From contig CP075497.1 of NCBI GenBank assembly GCA_021613535.1, positions 2,604,001-2,668,000 of the forward strand: DNA of 64,000 nt. Direction: 5' to 3'. How positions within the stretch are numbered: position 1 is the first letter of the stretch; each line of letters begins with the position of its first letter. The stretch comes from Adineta vaga. Lineage: Eukaryota > Animalia > Rotifera. Position numbers and translations under genes: made by a program. The notes beneath the pieces are model-generated. The model was not told the DNA's origin and did no database searches. It was given only the letters and a program-made list of their open reading frames with translations. Of the stretch, positions 26,826 to 37,530 are shown in pieces.

Positions 26826-29800
26826 GTAGGTAAAAGCGAATATGATATTTGATTGACTAATCTGAATGACAGAAAGTTGTTTATTATCAGATATTTATCT
26901 ATGATAAACTGAAAGAATGAAGAGATAAACAATATATTACTCTCGTCACTTGATGTTGTTGTTTTGATAATAGTTTCTTTTACGTAAGGTAAATAGAAGT
27001 GAATCCTGAGTTAGAAACCTGTTTCTAACGTGTGTTTTTTTATTTTATTTGATCAAAACGTGATTATCATTGAGTACTTTCGTGAGAATATTGTTTTTTT
27101 CTTTTACTAAATAAATTTTCATCAATGAAAAAAAGAAATATAAATATGTCATAGTATCAATAAAGTTTGATCGTCTGATGTTTTAATACTTAGAAAAACA
27201 ATTGATTTATCTATTAGTTCTTAGAAATTCTTTTCATATCGATACATTTTCTCATGTCTTGATCTTCTCATTGGAATATAAATTATTAATATATTGTATA
27301 TAAAATCTGTTTTCTGTTTTTATTATCTCGTCTCGATGATTATTAACAAATATTTTTTCAATGAATATTAGCTAGAAATATTAGATAAATGAAATAAAAA
27401 CATATTCAGTGCATACTTAGCTAAAGGCCAATAGCAGATGAAATGGCATCCTCTCTATTGTCATTATCTATTCAAAATAAAAATGCCAATATAACAATAT
27501 AAGTATGACTATATGATGCCATTTTAATATGAAATCTCGAGCTCGCTCAGTATATATTAAATAAGAAAACTTTTCTTCTTGTCATGCAATTCTTCTTCGT
27601 TTTCTCCTTATTCTTTTCTCTTATGTCGTCTTCTTTTTCTCTTTCTTCTTCTTCTTCTTTTATCGCGTAGTTTCAATGTATCTATGTGTGCAGGTTTTTC
27701 TTCTCATTTCTTCTTCGTTATACTATTACGTTCAGTATTTTTCATTTCCTCATATATTCCTCGTTGTCGAGTTTTGACTAATATATACCGTTGGTTCAGA
27801 TCCGAACGTTTAATAACTAGTGTCTCTCTGTTCTTTTCATTTAGTTTGTTTTCTCCTTCTGTCTTTTGCATTACTTTGCCTGGCTCTCCTTTCTCTTTTC
27901 TACATTCATCTGCAATGATTACAACAAAAACAAGAGAATGATGACGTCGATGACGAAGAGTGGTAGAACGCATACACACACTCTCCCATATATATATTCT
28001 ATATAGAAGAGCATTCTCTTCGTCGGCAGCGACGTGGCGACCATCACATGTATTAAATTCGATCAACATTACTATTTACCTCAGTCAAATAAATTGATTA
28101 AAGAGAAGGTAGAAATACCAATTATACTAAACAAAGTATATTTATATATCTCGAAAACGGTGCCCCATCGATTTGGAACGAGTTGGTGGCTGGTGGCCGA
28201 CAGATATGATGATGATGATGATTGGAATTATATGACCGAAGAGTCGAATGATATCACTCATTGCTCTTCACCACCGCTCAAGCGTATTAAATTAGGTAAG
28301 TAACTTGTAAGATAATAGAGAGATAAATAATTAATGCGTTTTGATCAATAAATCTTCTCTTCCAGTTACATTTAAAACGAGAAAGAAAAAACGATCCATT
28401 AGAAGACAAACTTGACTAAGTTTATAATGTTTAAGAAAAAAAGATGCTTATAAAAATGTGGCTCCCTCTGTTTAATTCATTAAGATGATTGTCACTTAGT
28501 CTATGGAAATGAAGGAGACGGATATGCGTGTGTATCTTAGCGACCATGTCGCCGATGATATTCTTATATCCGGATTTGAGTCTAGCACGCATGTATACCC
28601 ACAGATGACTGGTTAGTTTTTCTCTTCGTAAATTGTTTTTACTTTCTTTCCTTTTTTGTGTATATTTATAAAGAAATTTTACTTGAAAAATTTTCGCCTC
28701 AAACAAAACTTTGAACTAAATTATGAAAAAACGACATGTGTCGTTAACCAATCATAATAATTATTTATTTCATTAGATTAAAAACTATGTTCTTTTTTGT
28801 CTTTCAATCGATATAATGAGTTTTTTATCTACAAAAATTCGAAATTTTCATCATATTTTTGTCTATATAAAAATTAAAACCGTTATATCCAGGTGTCTAC
28901 TTATGTTTGTCCTTAAATAACATATAGTATCGTTTTTCTCTTTGTTTCTTTCGTTGTGTTTAACTCGTCAAAATAGTATAATCTGATTCTCTAAGCATTT
29001 CAGTAATTCATTGAATATAATTTATGACAGTTACCTGTCATGGATAGTAACTTGTATGATTTCTTTTTTGTTTTACGACTATACAGTAAATCATTCATCA
29101 TTCTAGTACTGATTGAATTCGTAACATGTTAGTGAACGATTACGCACAAGTGTTGTTTTTACATTCGAATAGACTCCATAAAAACGGTAATAGAAGGTTT
29201 CAATTCTTTATGATCGGAAAGAAAATTTGCACTGACTTTCTTTCTTTCTTTCTTGAAATGTTTCATTTTTACATATAATCGGAAGAAACAATTGATTGTT
29301 AAATATTATCTCGATTTTATTAGTTGATTCAATTATGAAAAACAAGAATTTCAATCGATAAGATTAATTACAGATTTGTCTTTTTTTTCCTCCAAGTACT
29401 TCTTTTCCTTACAGGACAAAAGATTAATGAACGAGATTGATAATCAGATATCGAATGATTGTTTCGTGATAGATAAAGTTAATAGGGCAATTATCTTATT
29501 ATTCTCATCATTTCGGATCTCATGTTCTTCATTTACATTATTCTGGTATGTTTCATCTTTTGTTTTCTAACAAATTACTTTTGCATGTCTTAGATACTTT
29601 TTTTCTTCATCTCCATGTAATATGACTATTCGAAAACGAGAGAGAGAGAAAAAAAAGACTTGAGAATAACGATTAGATCGATTTGTTTTCCTTTGTATAT
29701 TCTCAATTAGTTATTGCGATTTAATCTTGATTTTTCTTTTCTTTTCTCTTCTTTTTTTTATTATTCATCTCTATATCTTATCAAATAAGTTCGAGTTTTT

Positions 29801-32800
29801 GTTTTTGTCGAGAATATTTTTGTTGTTATTGTCTCTATTGACATTCTCTATGGAGTTAAATCTTTTTGACCTGGACTGTATATGTTAAGATTTGAATTCT
29901 TTTATTTAGTTTGCCTTATGACACCTTGTTATTATTGATGAAATAGGTTTCTTTTTTTATATAAATCGATTCTATACGAAATAAATAGAAGATAATAATA
30001 AGAGATAAGAGAATAGAAAGAGTTTTTACTCATTATTCATTGTCGGTAATCGACATTCTCTTTTATAAAAAAAAGTTTAGTCGGCGTCATTGTTGCATTA
30101 TTATTGCGTTCATCCTTAATCATAATTTGTAAAGCTTCTTCTGCTCTGTCGCATCAAGCAGTAGTATGTAGTAACAGCACGAGGCGAGCTCTTCTTCTTC
30201 TTCTTCTTCTTCTCTTTCCTTTTACCAACGGGCTGAGTCAACGAGAAGAGAAAGAGAAGGACGGAAACAAGAGGGCTGTTGTACTGCTAGTGTTACTTCT
30301 TCTCTCTTTTCTTCTTTCTCTGCTTTGGTTATTCGTCTTCGGGCTAGCTACCCTAAGAGTACGTCAGCAACTAGTGCCTTAACTCTTAGTAGTAGTGTTG
30401 GTTTATAGACGCAACAAAACGTCCACGCGCCTCGCCCGCACTATCGATTGCCTTTATACAATTCTTTCTAGTTTGCTTGCGCCTTCTAATAAAGACGCTC
30501 GTTCTTCTATTTCTTTTCCTCTCATCAGAATCATTGCTGTTGCAATCGCTCGTACGCCATCGTTACACATATTTATTTTGGTCGTTATTGTCGTCGGTGG
30601 TGGTCGCATGTTTTTGTTGTTGTTGTTGTTGTTGTTATTGCAAGACGAGGGAGTTTGCCGACGATGACATATGTCACAACTCACTACCGCGACGGCGTCG
30701 AATCAATTCTTCCACCATTACCATTATCATTATCATTATCATCAACAACAACAAAAACATTTCTTTCGTGTGATATTCGTCCTCGACGACATTCACGAGT
30801 TTGTTCATCATGAATCTTATCAAATGTTGTACCTCGACTCGTTCCTCATCCGATCATCAAAATCTAATAAATAATAATAACAACAAGAGTACATCAAAAA
30901 AGAAAACTCGTCATCGTTCCCCTACCAAATATGGCGGTATGTTCGGTATTCTCTCTTTTTTCATGTTCTTTCTTCGTCTTCGTCTTCGTCTTCTTCTTCT
31001 TCTCCTCTTTTCTTCATTTACCGATGCTCTTTTCTTCATATTCTAGCTCTAAGGTAATCCTTGATAGTTAAATCTATATCTAAATTGACAATTACATATT
31101 AGTATTCTCGAACATCACTAGCTTTATATATATATACATATGATCAAATATACATACATATGTAGATGCATACATAGATGAGAATATAGAAGTCTGTAGG
31201 TATACGTGTCTTTCACAATCTTACATTTTACCCTAGTGAGAAGGTATTGCATGTGTCTACTTTGCGTGTTATTAATTGATGCGTATGTATATACGTGCTT
31301 GCATATATGTTTCATGGTTTTTTTTGTTTTCGAACATGGTCACATAAAATAAGATAACATCAAGTCATCGTTATTACTACCTCATGTGCAATGATAGTTA
31401 GCTATTCAGAAACATAGAGGAAATGACAAAGGATGCTTATTATATTGCTGAACATGGAGCGAAAAAAAAGGGAAATAGAGAAATTGAGAGGAAAAAAAAG
31501 CTTTTTGTAATATGATATGATCTAAAAGAAATGCAAAAGATGATGATGAGGATGAGAATAATGTCAAAAAATTAACAATGAAATAAAAATGAAAGATTAA
31601 TAATAACTATAAGCATGAAAGAAATGGAATCTTATCTTTGACAATCTTTACATAGAAATTATGTATAATATATGCATGAAATTGACAGACTAAAGATTTC
31701 CTTTCTTTATTCATTTTTTCCTTTTCTAGCCAATTCTGAACCATTACCATCTTCGGTCACAGCCGATACAGTCAAAAATTATCTTTATGAACATCCTGAA
31801 TTTCTTGATTCATTTGTTGAACAAAATATCAATTCAAATACTATCAAACAATGGATGTCGAAAAAACCTCAAACAACGCAAGTTCAAGAACAATCAAGTG
31901 CATCGACATCAACTCATCTGCCTCGTTCTTCCCCTCCAACACCTCCATCATCATCATCATCATTATTAATACCAATAATTCTACCAGAACCAAACAATAT
32001 TTCATCATCAACAACAGACTTTTTATTATCAACAAATCCTGGTAAATAAAAAAACTAAGAAGAAAATTTATCATCATAGTTTGGTTATGTTTAATCATTT
32101 CGATGAATTTTCATATGATTTATGATAACATCTGTTTGCATTTTTGTTTCTTATGAAAGATCTTTATCGGATTTGTTTAGTTGGAATGACGACTACAACA
32201 ACAACAACGACTTCAATCGAACCATCATCTTCAACAATGTCATCTACAACAGCAAATTCCATGAGTAAAGTAAATAAAAATCTTCTAGTAATTTCTTTTC
32301 TTCTCAATTTGTCATGATTCTATCTTTTATTCTAGTTGACAGAATTAAGTAATCGACGTCGTTTATTACATGAATTAACAGATGAAGTTAATCAGAATGT
32401 AACGAAAGCTCAAGTTCTATATGAATTATGCAAATCAATTGCATCGAGTATAGTCAAATGAATTTCCTTTTTTTCTTTTCTATGATTTTTTAATTTACAT
32501 TTAATGTTTTTAGCAATATCAGCCGATGGATTTAATTTGTATTTGGTAGATGAAACTGGAAATTATATGCGATTATTCATTGCAGAAAATGATGAGTAAA
32601 TTTCTAATGAATTTCAAATGAAAAAATATCGAAATCGTTTCTTTTAGTGAACAAGCAGCTTCATTTGTTCCCATTGAAATTGGAATTGGTCGTTGTATTG
32701 CAGGTTATGTTGCAGCAACTAAAGAAATTGTTCGCATAAATAATACTGCTTTGGTAAAGAAAATATATTCGATATAAATTCTTTTTTCATCTCTTTATTT

Positions 32801-35800
32801 TTAGTTAACATCAGAAAAATATCCTGATGGTCTCTATATTAAAGATGATCAAGTAACTAGTGTTATGGCACATCCCATTGTGAATTCTCAAGGAAAACTT
32901 CTTAGTAAATGAAATATTCTTCTGAATTTTAATTCAATCTATTTGAAAATTAGGTGTAGTGGAATTCTATCGAACTGATGGAATAACTCCATTTTCTGAT
33001 GAAGATGAAGAAGTAAGTTTCTTATTCATATGAGCATTTTTCGTCGTTGTCCAATATTGTGAAGTATTGGTACTAAAATAACCTAGCTTTTTTTTCTAAT
33101 TGTCTATGCAAAATGATCTGCATATTATGAAGGAAAACAAATCCTTGTTATATGATAAACCTCTTTTGAAGAATTTCGTGATGCTTCAGTCGTAATTAGT
33201 GTTTTCCAACAATTAATCAGCTTTATATATTTTAATTAAACTTATTCTTTTATTCAATGTAGTCAATAATTTCATTCTCTTTTGCTTCAGGAAATTGTAA
33301 AATGCGTGAATGAGCTTTTCACCCAAACATATTACGAGGTATTAAATATGCACATCCTTTCTTTTCTACATTGTTTGATTCTTATATGTGTATATCTGCT
33401 TGCTTCGATATAAATCTTTGGTTTTTTTTTTGATATGTCACGAACATAATTCAATTTCATAATGCATGAATAACTAGCTCGTTTCAATTCAATTTTTTTC
33501 ATCTTGTTGCTTCGAAGAAAAAAACACAATGACAGAAATTCTGTTTTATTCTATTCTTTAGCTTTATCATACAATGACACGAGAACGACGTTTGAACGAT
33601 TTTCTTTTAACTGTGACGAAATCAATTTTCCAAGAACTTGTTAGTATGGATGTTGTGATGTTGAAAATCATGGTAAGAAAAGAAATACATAAATATTCAA
33701 ATCTATTCGTATGTTTTCTTTTAGAGTTATGCGAAAAAGTTAGTCAATGCTGATCGTGCTTCATTATTTATGGTTGATTCAAGAACAAAAGAACTTTATG
33801 CACGCATCTTTGATATTGGACGTGAAGAACATGATATGCTTGATTCATCTGCTATTAATGATAATGATGGAGAAAAGCGTTCAGCATCGGATGAACGTCC
33901 TTGTATACGTTTTCCTATGGATAAAGGAATCGCTGGTTATGTAGCAACAACAAGAGAAACATTAAATATTCTTGATGCTTATAGTGATAGTCGATTTAAT
34001 CGGTAAAGAATGAAAAATAAAAAATTGTTTTGTTTAATTGAAATGTCTTTATGTAGAGATATTGATCAGAAAACAGGTTATAAAACGAAGACACTTTTAT
34101 GTATGCCAATTATGATTCAAGGAAATGTAATTGGTGTTGTTCAAATGGTCAATAAAAAAAATGGACATTTTACTAAAAGTGATGAGGAATCATTTGAAAC
34201 ATTTGCTGTTTATTGTGGACTTGGTATGTTGAACTACTGAGAAATGAGTCTTTTTCTCTTATGAGATATAATCAAATTTTTTCTTTTCCATGTCATTTAG
34301 CTCTTCATCATGCATCACTTTATGATCGTATTCGTCGTTCGGAACAAAAGTGTAAAGTATCACTTGAAGTTCTATCGTATCACGCATCATGTACTGATGA
34401 AGAATACGAACGAATGAAAGCTTGTTCACTTCCTGAAAACATTCCATATCTCGAACGATTTGAATACTCACCATGGGATGTAACGAATGATCTTAAACCA
34501 ACTTATGTTCTATTTATGTTTCTTGATCTTGCTAATGTTGATCCATTATATGCGTATCGGTAAAATTAACCCAAAGAATTTGTTTTTAATATTTATTTGT
34601 TCTGATTTTATTTAGATTTGATATTGAATGTTTAATGAGATTTATATTAACTGTACGAAGAAATTATCGAAATGTTCCATATCATAATTGGTCACATGCA
34701 TTCAGTGTAGCACATTCAATTTATACTGTGATAAAACAAACAAAACATCAATTTTCACCCAATGATGTATATTCGATTTAGAATTACATTTCATAAAAAA
34801 AAGAAAATGAAACTTTTCTTTTAGTGTATTGCTCTGTTTGTTGCTTGCCTTTGTCATGATCTTGATCATCGTGGTAAAACCAATGCTTTTATGGTCAAAA
34901 GTGCATCAGCTCTTGCTTCAATTTATACAACTTCAACAATGGAACGACATCATTTCAATCAAACAGTTACCATCCTTCAAGTAAAGAACACATTTTCCAT
35001 CATATTCATCAATTAAATTCGTATATTGTTTTTAGACTGAAAATTTGAATATCTTTAAACATTATTCTTCGAAAGAATATCGACAAATGTTAGATGAAAT
35101 TCGTCATTGTATATTAGCAACTGATTTAGCATTGTTTTTTGAAAATCGTCCAAAACTTGAACGTATTGTTGATATGACAGATTTTAATTGGCATAACAAA
35201 GAACATTTGTAAGTTATGAAATGAAACACATTGTCTTTCATGCCTTATTTTAAACAACAAACAAAAAATAATTTTATAATTTGATTTTCGAAATCTGCCG
35301 CAATAATCCCTTTGTTTTAATATTTTATTTATCATCCTTTGTCACTGATTGTATTTGTGTGGTGATAGTGCCTGTTTTTCTTGACCTTGATCCTTTTTAA
35401 TACCGTGTGTTTGTGTGCATTATATTGACACATAGTTAGCACAGATTTTGACACTTTGGAATGATAATATCAACAAAGAAAAACTATTCTTTGATTATTT
35501 ATTGCACACATATGTTTTCGATTTATATTAATTCACAAATTCTTTTCTCTGTAGGCTACATTTGATGGAGCTCAGTATGACCGCTGCGGATTTATGTTCT
35601 TCATATAAGCAATGGGACGTGCAGCGGTCGAATGTGAGCGTCATCATGGAAGAATTCTTCCAGCAGGTGATTGAAAATTTCATACCTTTCCACTGCTTTA
35701 TCTGTCTCTCTTTCTGTGTATTCATAATTCACGACAAGAAAGCAGCACTTACTTTTATAGATGAATAGATTTCTCCCAGTATAGACACGCACTATTATCA

Positions 35801-36843
35801 CCACCAAATACAATTCGAGCAAATTGGATGTAAAGAAGAAAAAAAACGAAGGGAGAGCGGCTAAGAATTATTTTTGAACGAGTTTTATTCGTAATTTTGA
35901 CGTTCGATTGTTTATTTTTCTTTTTCAATTTTTACTTCCAGTCGACGATTACAATCAATAGCAATGACATCTGCCGATTTATGTGCTATGTATAAACCAT
36001 GGCAAGTTCAACAAGAAGTTGTCAGTACAATTATGGACGAGTTTTGGGAAGAGGTGTGCTTTTTTTCTCTATGTATCTGTAATTGCTGCTTTCTTCTAAT
36101 CGATAGAATGAAAAAGAGAGAGAGAAAGATGCATCAATTCTTCTTTTTTTGCTTTTGAATTTGATTTTATATGTTAACTATATTCTTTTCATGCAGGGTG
36201 ATGAAGAAAAAAGTCAAGGTCTTCAACCACAATCATTAATGGATCGATCTCTTGCTCATGAATTACCAAAAAATCAGGTAAATCTCACTTCTTTTGTTCT
36301 TTGAACTAAAGATAAATTCGTGTTACATTCTATAAGGAAAAAAAAAGATCATATTTAGTTGTGTTTATCTTGGGACTAACAACAATGATAGAATAATTTT
36401 ATTCTCTTCCGTCAAATGACAAGGGATTAAAAAGTAGAATGAAATCTTTTAGTAATCAGATTAAGATTTTCTCGTACTATTCCATTGAGACATTCCATTT
36501 TCTTTCTCTTTTTTTCATTAATATCTAATAAATCTTTTTTATTTCAGGTGAACTTTATTAAAAGTATTTGTCTCCCATGTTATTCATTAATGGCACGTAT
36601 TCTGCCAGAAACAATCCCAATGCTCAACGGAGCGAAGTAAATTTCAAATGAATCTTTGACTTTTTCATTCTGCTTAATTCTTTGTCTTTATGTAGAAGTA
36701 ATCTTCAACGATGGCAAGAATTAGCCGATGAAACTTTACAAAAAACTCAAACGAATAGAACTGCTACTGCATCAACGGATGATATGTCCAAATCTTCTCT
36801 AATTTCTCCAGCTAACAATAACGGTCAGCCAGCATCATCGTGA
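26720..36843 (+). CDS. PDE10-like GAF-GAF cyclic nucleotide phosphodiesterase with alternative first exons and mutually exclusive catalytic exons
   Basis: The common exon from 31730 encodes [27 protein letters not shown] (PDE10 N-terminal motif). Two GAF domains ([36 protein letters not shown]). Catalytic motifs [39 protein letters not shown] and [12 protein letters not shown] at 36841-36843. Confidence 0.92.
28232..28295 (+). CDS. PDE alternative first exon 1b ([21 protein letters not shown])
   Basis: Perfect AG|gtaagt donor in phase 1; ends in a monopartite NLS-like motif. Confidence 0.7.
28503..28611 (+). CDS. PDE alternative first exon 1c ([36 protein letters not shown])
   Basis: GC-richer open stretch from an ATG (in-frame TAG just upstream) to a G|gttagt donor in phase 1. 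Confidence 0.55.
30810..30936 (+). CDS. PDE alternative first exon 1d ([13 protein letters not shown]...[17 protein letters not shown])
   Basis: G|gtatgt donor in phase 1; N-terminal Cys-Cys plus a basic cluster. Confidence 0.7.
35297..35861 (+). promoter_or_regulatory. Intronic imperfect inverted repeat (arms 35297-35377 and 35783-35861) enclosing PDE exon A; candidate splicing-regulatory RNA duplex
   Basis: Nested complementary blocks: gccgc/gcggc, tccctttgtttt/aaaacgaaggga, tttatcatcctttg/caaattggatgtaaa and attgtatttgtgtggtgatagtgc/gcactattatcaccaccaaatacaat. Confidence 0.75.
35555..35666 (+). CDS. PDE mutually exclusive catalytic exon A (112 nt)
   Basis: ctgtag acceptor and CAG|gtgatt donor, phase 2-0; encodes [37 protein letters not shown]. 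Confidence 0.85.
35942..36053 (+). CDS. PDE mutually exclusive catalytic exon B (112 nt)
   Basis: ttccag acceptor and GAG|gtgtgc donor, phase 2-0; encodes [37 protein letters not shown]. Confidence 0.88.
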
Positions 36844-37176
36844 TATGCTTTTCGTTTTCTTTTTCTCAATCGGTTTTTTTTTGCTACAAAAGAAATGAAA
36901 TATTTTGAAAAAAATGATGTTTGTGTGTATTTTATTCTTTTGTTGTTTTTGTGTTTATTTTTTTCCTTATTTTTTTTTCTTCTCTTCGTTTCGGTTTTTT
37001 TTTCTCTTTTTTTTTATATACACAAAACAATGATGATCTTAATATTTCTAACTGCATCATTCTCCAAAAATGAACGTTTTCTTTTATTTTCACATAGAGA
37101 CAAATGACAATAACGATACATCTTTGTTTTTATGAAAAAACACACAAACGCAAATGACTAAATACATATTATGTAT

Positions 37177-37209
<33 letters not shown>

Positions 37210-37530
37210 AAAAGAGCGACAAGAGGACAATAAACGATGAGAAATAAGATAGAGGACAATGTTTTGTTTTCTTTTCATCAAAGAATTACTGATATAATAA
37301 TAACAACAACAAAAACAAAACAAACAATGTTGTCTAGTATAAATTTGCTTCTTCTGTAAATATGTCAATATATGCGTATGTGTGTAATGAAGAGAGAGAG
37401 AAAGATATGTATTCGTGCGGAATTGGTCAGCGCGCGAAAGAGAGAAATGATGCTTAAAACATCAAACAAACAAGAAAGAAAAAAAGAAAGTTTAGAGGAA
37501 AAAAAACAAAACAAATAAATGAATGAATGT

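Follow-up and report, generated by a model that had tools for sequence, protein, structure and literature searches.

A bdelloid rotifer, Adineta vaga, very probably carries an ancient, tandem-duplicated pair of mutually exclusive exons, hereafter A and B, in a gene for a GAF-containing phosphodiesterase (PDE) of the PDE10 type. The gene lies in a 64 kb stretch of DNA (positions 2,604,001 to 2,668,000 of contig CP075497.1, assembly GCA_021613535.1), which was analysed as a whole, is referred to as the window, and supplies the position numbers used below unless another contig is named. Since the segment that alternates belongs to the catalytic pocket, the gene is predicted to yield two variants of the catalytic domain, one for each exon. 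The gene and the exons and introns concerned are as follows.

31730 to 36843, + strand: PDE10-like GAF-phosphodiesterase gene, counted from its common second exon through the stop codon, with 19 exons in the B form
35036 to 35208, + strand: constitutive exon 14, PDEase_I positions 86-140; ends two bases into a codon; strong donor GTAAGT
35209 to 35554, + strand: intron 1, exon 14 to exon A; unspliced RNA contigs at 35181-35584, low depth
35555 to 35666, + strand: alternative exon A, 112 nucleotides (nt), type DLCSS...EEFFQQ; weak donor GTGATT
35667 to 35941, + strand: intron 2, A to B; 5' half complementary to intron 3, 3' half to intron 1
35942 to 36053, + strand: alternative exon B, 112 nt, type DLCAMYKPW...EFWEE; weak donor GTGTGC
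36054 to 36196, + strand: intron 3, B to exon 16; holds the partner arms of the intron-2 elements
36197 to 36277, + strand: constitutive exon 16; begins GDEEK and has the invariant Gln at its end; A and B are both spliced to its acceptor

Two exons and one reading frame

Both alternative exons are bounded by AG upstream (preceded by a pyrimidine tract) and GT downstream, and each can be read openly in only one of its three frames. They are identical at 62 of 112 nt in an ungapped comparison and at 18 of 38 amino acids (when the two carried-over bases of exon 14 are included), and they match the PDEase_I profile of Pfam at the same place (profile positions 149-183) with 28.6 bits for A and 27.9 bits for B, the gathering cut-off being 24.8 bits. 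When the region is translated locally, A alone or B alone leaves the frame open into exon 16, and inclusion of both or of neither shifts it and brings in stop codons. These results agree with the original prediction, made from the window, of two homologous 112-nt exons with intact splice sites at these coordinates, exactly one of which is usable in a given message, and the transcripts described below agree too, in that they contain A or B and an A-B joint is unseen.

The pair is not a chance occurrence, because the A-then-B layout recurs in seven further gene copies. The weak donors are likewise kept in seven of the eight copies, as GTGATT after A and as GTGTG(C/A) after B. Steric hindrance and U2/U12 incompatibility, which were considered as mechanisms of exclusion, are ruled out by an A-B intron of 110-313 nt and by splice sites that are all GT-AG.

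Another, consensus-like donor (AAT/GTGAGC) lies inside exon A at 35633/35634. The equivalent site is used in the gene models of Adineta ricciae (P0208) and Rotaria sp. Silwood2 (P0027), which thereby use part of A, and the resulting form is in-frame, 11 residues shorter and devoid of the Ile/Met/Phe pocket floor; use of this inner donor was not found in any transcript examined.

Both exons are found in RNA

RNA contigs of four runs, mapped over 31500-37300 (joint positions being set with small permitted shifts), cover the whole gene with GT..AG joints, and every exon is open in phase. The joint 35208->35942, by which A is skipped and B is used, was recovered from all four runs, and the main path of the assembled bulk RNA of this genome runs through B. 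Skipping of B is seen in one contig of run X4, in which 35666 is joined directly to exon 16 and which ends 14 letters into that exon; the same 14 letters follow 36053 in run X1.

Database sequences widen this picture. Spliced transcripts that run exon13/14-A-exon16-exon17 come from two JGI samples of related bdelloids (L015 and L026), and A is also joined to exon 16 in P0207 and in L016 (a Logan run), the latter being spliced except for the 77-nt intron before A. Together with the X4 contig, this makes five contigs, drawn from no fewer than four samples, that show A spliced to exon 16. B-type transcripts are represented by L025 and P0206, B is also carried by P0202-P0204, and it is the exon chosen in the gene models of A. 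steineri, Rotaria sp. Silwood1, R. magnacalcarata and Didymodactylos. No A-to-B joint was found among the 15 of 22 joints listed for this genome or in the database transcripts.

An ancient pair under purifying selection

A second, collinear copy of the gene (the ohnolog) is located on C3, where A' and B' occupy G000:C3:12447506-12447854, again with 112 nt each and with AG/GT borders. This copy is transcribed too, since contigs with loose ends in runs X1 and X4 switch at 35161 into its exon 14 (L014, that is, G000:C3:12442000-12451999). Altogether, the A-then-B pair, with each exon 112 nt long, open and flanked by AG/GT, is present in eight gene copies: those of the window and of C3, five on environmental bdelloid contigs (L017, L020, L021, L022 and L027) and one in Didymodactylos carnosus (L024). 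The order in the environmental contigs and in L024 is always exon 14, A, B, with exon 16 next wherever the contig reaches it (L021 ends before exon 16, and its intron 3 is incomplete). Between the ohnologs, A and A' are identical at 30 of 37 amino acids and B and B' at 24 of 37, compared with 16-19 of 37 between types; this higher identity within types indicates that the exon duplication predates the gene duplication.

Several estimates point to selection on the encoded peptides. For A/A', the non-synonymous rate (dN) is 0.083 and the synonymous rate (dS) 0.85, a ratio of 0.10, and for B/B' the figures are 0.196 and 0.58, a ratio of 0.34 (Nei-Gojobori). The dN/dS of exon A is about 0.03-0.16 in most pairs, and neutrality is rejected (P<0.05) in 14 of 15 pairs for A and in 14 of 15 for B when six copies are compared; in these six, non-synonymous change is low, synonymous sites are diverged or saturated, and identity amounts to 21-63% in introns and 69-88% in exons. 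Both exons are under purifying selection and are therefore both translated and useful. When the open frame that surrounds exon A was used as a query, 26 database open reading frames were retrieved, all with an A-type peptide and with intron read-through tails that differ. On the comparison with relatives that the original prediction had called for, exon A is neither decayed nor absent, being intact in eight copies, low in dN/dS and transcribed, and selection and transcripts together rule out its being a pseudo-exon. The long-term retention of both exons argues for some functional difference between the two forms.

One comparison stands apart: between the window and its closest relative, L021, the proportion of synonymous differences (pS) is 0.20 in A and 0.66 in B, both of which rest on small numbers. 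The low value in A could reflect either RNA-level constraint or gene conversion.

Outside bdelloids, no second exon at the pocket site was found in 15 Ostrea and 9 Gordionus isoforms of the PDE10 type, all of which carry one common exon where the rotifer gene has alternative ones. Identity to Ostrea is 22-25 of 37 residues for A and 18-20 of 37 for B. The simple view that A is derived and B ancestral is ruled out, as A is nearer overall to mollusc and annelid proteins and B keeps AMYKPW and EFW, which makes the pair a mosaic. Four other PDE paralogs of A. vaga each gave a single match to the exon, and the pair is therefore specific to the PDE10-like ohnologs.

G000:C2:14556361-14556459, C5:5799138-5799245, C3:6516159-6516263 and C6:10136557-10136661: PDE paralogs with a single exon (exon search)

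A phosphodiesterase of the PDE10 type

In homology searches made exon by exon, GAF (PF01590) was matched on exons 10 and 11, and PDEase_I (PF00233) was found to span exons 12-16, with 70 bits for exon 13, which holds the HDLDH motif, and with the Asp of the DLC motif present in A and in B. GAF-A was not detected by this exon-by-exon search, for which the upstream exons are individually too short. Among solved structures, exon 13 matches PDE10A best (2e-17, followed by PDE2A with 2e-15 and PDE5 with 4e-11), and exon 17 matches PDE10A only, as expected from the original prediction of a PDE10-like gene. The nearest full-length proteins among 1.8 billion representatives are invertebrate proteins named 'pde-5' (Ostrea, Nucella, Ridgeia, Gordionus and Opisthorchis), and then vertebrate PDE10A; pde-5 of C. 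elegans is of the PDE10 type. Because PDE6 and PDE5 rank slightly above PDE10 when A or B is searched alone, the assignment rests on the constitutive exons. The rotifer gene resembles vertebrate PDE10A and the invertebrate PDE10-type genes in its GAF and PDEase_I architecture, and it matches PDE10A in the motifs GDE(E/M)K...PCY...NL..W.

What the exons change in the catalytic domain

The alternative exon encodes a helix segment and spans six residues of PDE10A, namely Asp674 (metal-binding), Leu675, Ser677, Ile692, Tyr693 and Phe696 (with the spacing of P0077). Asp674, Leu675, Ser677, Ile692 and Phe696 are included in a list of PDE10A active-site residues (PMC11007772), and Tyr693 is the only one of the six outside it. 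The segment thus carries the metal-binding Asp and pocket residues, as had been claimed, and the PDE10A and PDE5 strings that the claim quoted agree with the database proteins P0077 and P0098. It was also correctly noted that both rotifer exons encode Met in place of the pocket Tyr of PDE10A, which in P0077 lies 19 residues after the Asp.

Six A and six B sequences share no residue between types at positions 2, 4, 5, 15, 16, 26, 32 and 35 of 37. Position 15, three residues after the Asp (Asp+3), is Ser in A and Ala in B; position 16 (Asp+4) is Ser in A and Met in B; and position 35 is Phe in A and Trp in B. The two types are identical at the Asp, Leu and Ile, at the clamp Phe and at the place of Tyr693, which is Met in both. 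That splicing swaps the substrate pocket, as first proposed, is therefore true of Asp+3 (and of its neighbour Asp+4), but overstated for the pocket as a whole, the other listed residues of which are identical. In the same way, of the differences that were described as pocket positions, DLCSS/DLCAM does fall on Asp+3, but RSNV/QEVV and the F/W exchange are off the cited active-site list. Asp+3 can matter for base recognition, because its equivalent in PDE4D, Asn321, three residues after the metal-binding Asp318, hydrogen-bonds adenine (PMC12839185).

Complementary segments in the introns

The introns around A and B contain complementary segments that are candidate splice-choice stems, the arms of which (with duplex energies, dG) are listed here.

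35736 to 35752, + strand: intron-2 arm with the 12-nt core AAGAAAGCAGCA; pairs with 36079-36095 over 17 nt, 94% complementary, dG -20.3
36079 to 36095, + strand: intron-3 arm with TGCTGCTTTCTT, the exact reverse complement of the core (complementarity search)
35697 to 35715, + strand: CU-rich intron-2 arm of an outer helix; pairs with GA-rich 36115-36133, dG -20.2
36115 to 36133, + strand: GA-rich intron-3 arm of the outer helix; other CU tracts also pair with it, and its partner is ambiguous
35251 to 35377, + strand: intron-1 arm of a long interrupted stem (12 helices) enclosing exon A (minimum-energy fold of 35209-36196)
35783 to 35914, + strand: intron-2 arm of the stem enclosing exon A (minimum-energy fold and duplex energy)

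The duplex of introns 1 and 2 has a dG of -119, compared with -71.6 +/- 7 for shuffles, and its core (35348-35376/35784-35813) one of -31.8, compared with -17.2 +/- 2.2; in the minimum-energy fold of 35209-36196, 35251-35377 pairs with 35783-35914 with a z of -4.4. These core arms are conserved in L021 and L027, and are absent from C3-type copies and from Didymodactylos.

The pairing of introns 2 and 3 around B is more widespread, exceeding dinucleotide shuffles in each of the seven copies whose intron 3 is complete; in L021, where the contig end cuts intron 3, both arms of the 12-nt core are present and the best duplex is not above shuffles. Four copies (window, L021, L027 and Didymodactylos L024) have this non-repetitive core 58-80 nt after the A donor and its reverse complement 27-53 nt after the B donor, and in the whole window the core occurs in just these two arms. 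The side on which the core helix is extended in Adineta-type copies is opposite to that in Didymodactylos, in which the helix reaches 19 perfect pairs (dG -31.7, compared with -17.7 +/- 0.8). The outer CU/GA helix has a homologue in L027, where, as in the window, both intron-2:intron-3 helices are present and nested, and CU/GA duplexes are found at like places in the ohnolog, L017, L020 and L022. Comparable duplexes were not found around the 14 exons upstream in the window.

How the exon might be chosen

On the main reading, each mRNA very probably takes either A or B between exons 14 and 16 (both or neither would entail a frame shift and a truncated protein), and the choice would be guided by long-range intron pairing. 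The intron-1:intron-2 stem would loop out A in C6-type copies, and the conserved intron-2:intron-3 stem would loop out B and draw the A donor toward the exon-16 acceptor. The weak, conserved donors of both exons would fit such regulated use. A bolder and rather unlikely proposal is that the pair is a toggle that was in place before the bdelloid radiation, by which splicing guided by RNA structure would exchange two pocket residues near the metal, with a handling of cyclic AMP (cAMP) and cyclic GMP (cGMP) that would differ across cells or states.

Several observations count against the main reading, some of which concern the stems and others the RNA. The 12-nt core is lacking in C3-type copies, the GA arm has several possible CU partners, and strong duplexes are found around constitutive exons 16 and 17 as well (z -7.7 and -5.0); it is owing to these similar flanks and to the ambiguous GA partner that a link between stems and exon choice is something we infer. 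In this genome, the use of A is seen in one contig end and in coverage, the exon14->A joint is not among the 15 of 22 joints listed, and contig depth is unfit for isoform ratios, contigs being prone to drop rare forms. Finally, all three A-type transcripts that reach exon 14 are defective: L016 keeps an intron, and in L015 and L026 the frame is interrupted at a T-run in another part of each contig, a small break that is probably an assembly error.

The arms around exons 16 and 17 are 36101-36129/36498-36526 (dG -29.6) and 36417-36445/36662-36687 (dG -28.0), and they weaken the specificity of the stems.

It is quite possible, if short of probable, that the complementary intron segments have no role in exon choice and are by-products, be they CU/GA tracts of low complexity, motifs that bind proteins or an old inverted repeat. 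The duplexes around exons 16 and 17 favour such an explanation, as does the absence of the intron-1:intron-2 stem from C3-type copies and Didymodactylos, and CU/GA tracts could, as a suggestion, bind splicing-regulator proteins instead. It does not easily accommodate a non-repetitive core that is found with its exact reverse complement at like positions in four copies whose introns have otherwise diverged, nor the change of side on which the helix extends, with its perfect pairing in Didymodactylos, nor the fact that the core recurs nowhere else in 64 kb.

Exon choice may have consequences for the enzyme whatever governs it, and a difference between the A and B enzymes in preference for cAMP versus cGMP is conceivable, if rather unlikely. 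The residues at Asp+3 and Asp+4 are type-specific and fixed over the eight copies, Ser677 is on the active-site list of PDE10A (PMC11007772), and the PDE4D residue equivalent to Asp+3 touches adenine (PMC12839185). However, the invariant Gln and the clamp Phe are placed in constitutive exons in this argument, the pocket Ile, Met and Phe are alike in A and B, and single-exon PDE10-type proteins from other phyla include some with Ser and some with Ala at Asp+3. Effects on kcat, on inhibitor or regulator binding, on GAF coupling or on stability are equally possible, and a cAMP/cGMP switch is thus only one possibility among the functional differences that the two exons might bring.

The state of the RNA raises the question of whether inclusion of A is productive at all. 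A is a minor form, and the intron that precedes it is often still unspliced: low-depth contigs run unspliced from exon 14 into A (35181-35584), 35209-35941 is covered at some depth, unlike introns of 270-280 nt in other parts of the gene, which have no coverage, and L016, from another species, keeps the same intron. Inclusion of A might then be mainly unproductive, with the retained intron bringing a stop just past exon 14 and lowering the output of PDE. This is improbable, since the amino acids of A are conserved (dN/dS as given above) despite diverged or saturated synonymous sites, unlike those of a poison exon, and since exon 14 is spliced to A in L015 and L026. That A is a duplicate in decay, or one never used, and that the enzyme is made with B every time, as the dominant assembled path in four runs and most database gene models might suggest, can be dismissed almost entirely, A being preserved intact with its 112 nt in eight copies, that of Didymodactylos among them, more conserved than B, and spliced to exon 16 in several samples.

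Other features of the gene

At least three different upstream sequences are joined to the acceptor at 31729/31730 in RNA contigs. Of these, two map within the window, at about 28263-28295 and 30906-30932, and a third was not located there; they resemble alternative first exons of the PDE gene. One run has a 6-nt in-frame deletion at 32204, in Thr-rich exon 2, and several single-base differences elsewhere are run-specific; both are probably allelic or strain variation.

Comparison with known systems

Mutually exclusive exons that arose by tandem duplication are of a well-known kind, of which the present case, in the catalytic pocket of a PDE, is a new instance. A full-text literature search found no paper on alternative exons in the catalytic pocket or domain of PDEs, nor on such exons in rotifers, and the papers it brought up on mutually exclusive exons and phosphodiesterases or rotifers appear to be unrelated. 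To our knowledge, PDE isoforms differ in their targeting or regulatory N-termini and not in the catalytic pocket. If the toggle proposed above is true, it would be a catalytic-site isoform switch of a sort not known for any phosphodiesterase. More generally, the gene offers (i) two catalytic-domain variants that occur naturally and have been retained by both ohnologs and all the way from Adineta to Didymodactylos, (ii) a ready-made experiment on the role of Asp+3 and Asp+4 in a PDE10-type pocket and (iii) an internal comparison, between two ohnologs of one asexual animal.

Among other enzymes, exons 4a and 4b of OGDH (PMC7969005) and exons 9 and 10 of the pyruvate kinase gene PKM are tandem-duplicated exons of equal size, one of which enters each mRNA, as in the rotifer pair. 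In OGDH as in PKM, enzymes with different properties result, and both belong to a different enzyme class from the rotifer PDE.

As for the choice of exon, competing RNA pairings between introns guide mutually exclusive splicing in insect Dscam exon 6, 14-3-3xi and Mhc, and in mammalian dynamin 1. No described case of mutually exclusive splicing by intron pairing in rotifers was found in the literature searched. The rotifer gene is like these systems in that conserved complementary intron elements bracket its alternative exons, and it differs from them in that intron 2 would pair with introns 1 and 3 through separate segments, with no evident docking site that the two pairings share. Its intron stems are a compact, testable case of possible structure-guided exon choice beyond insects and vertebrates.

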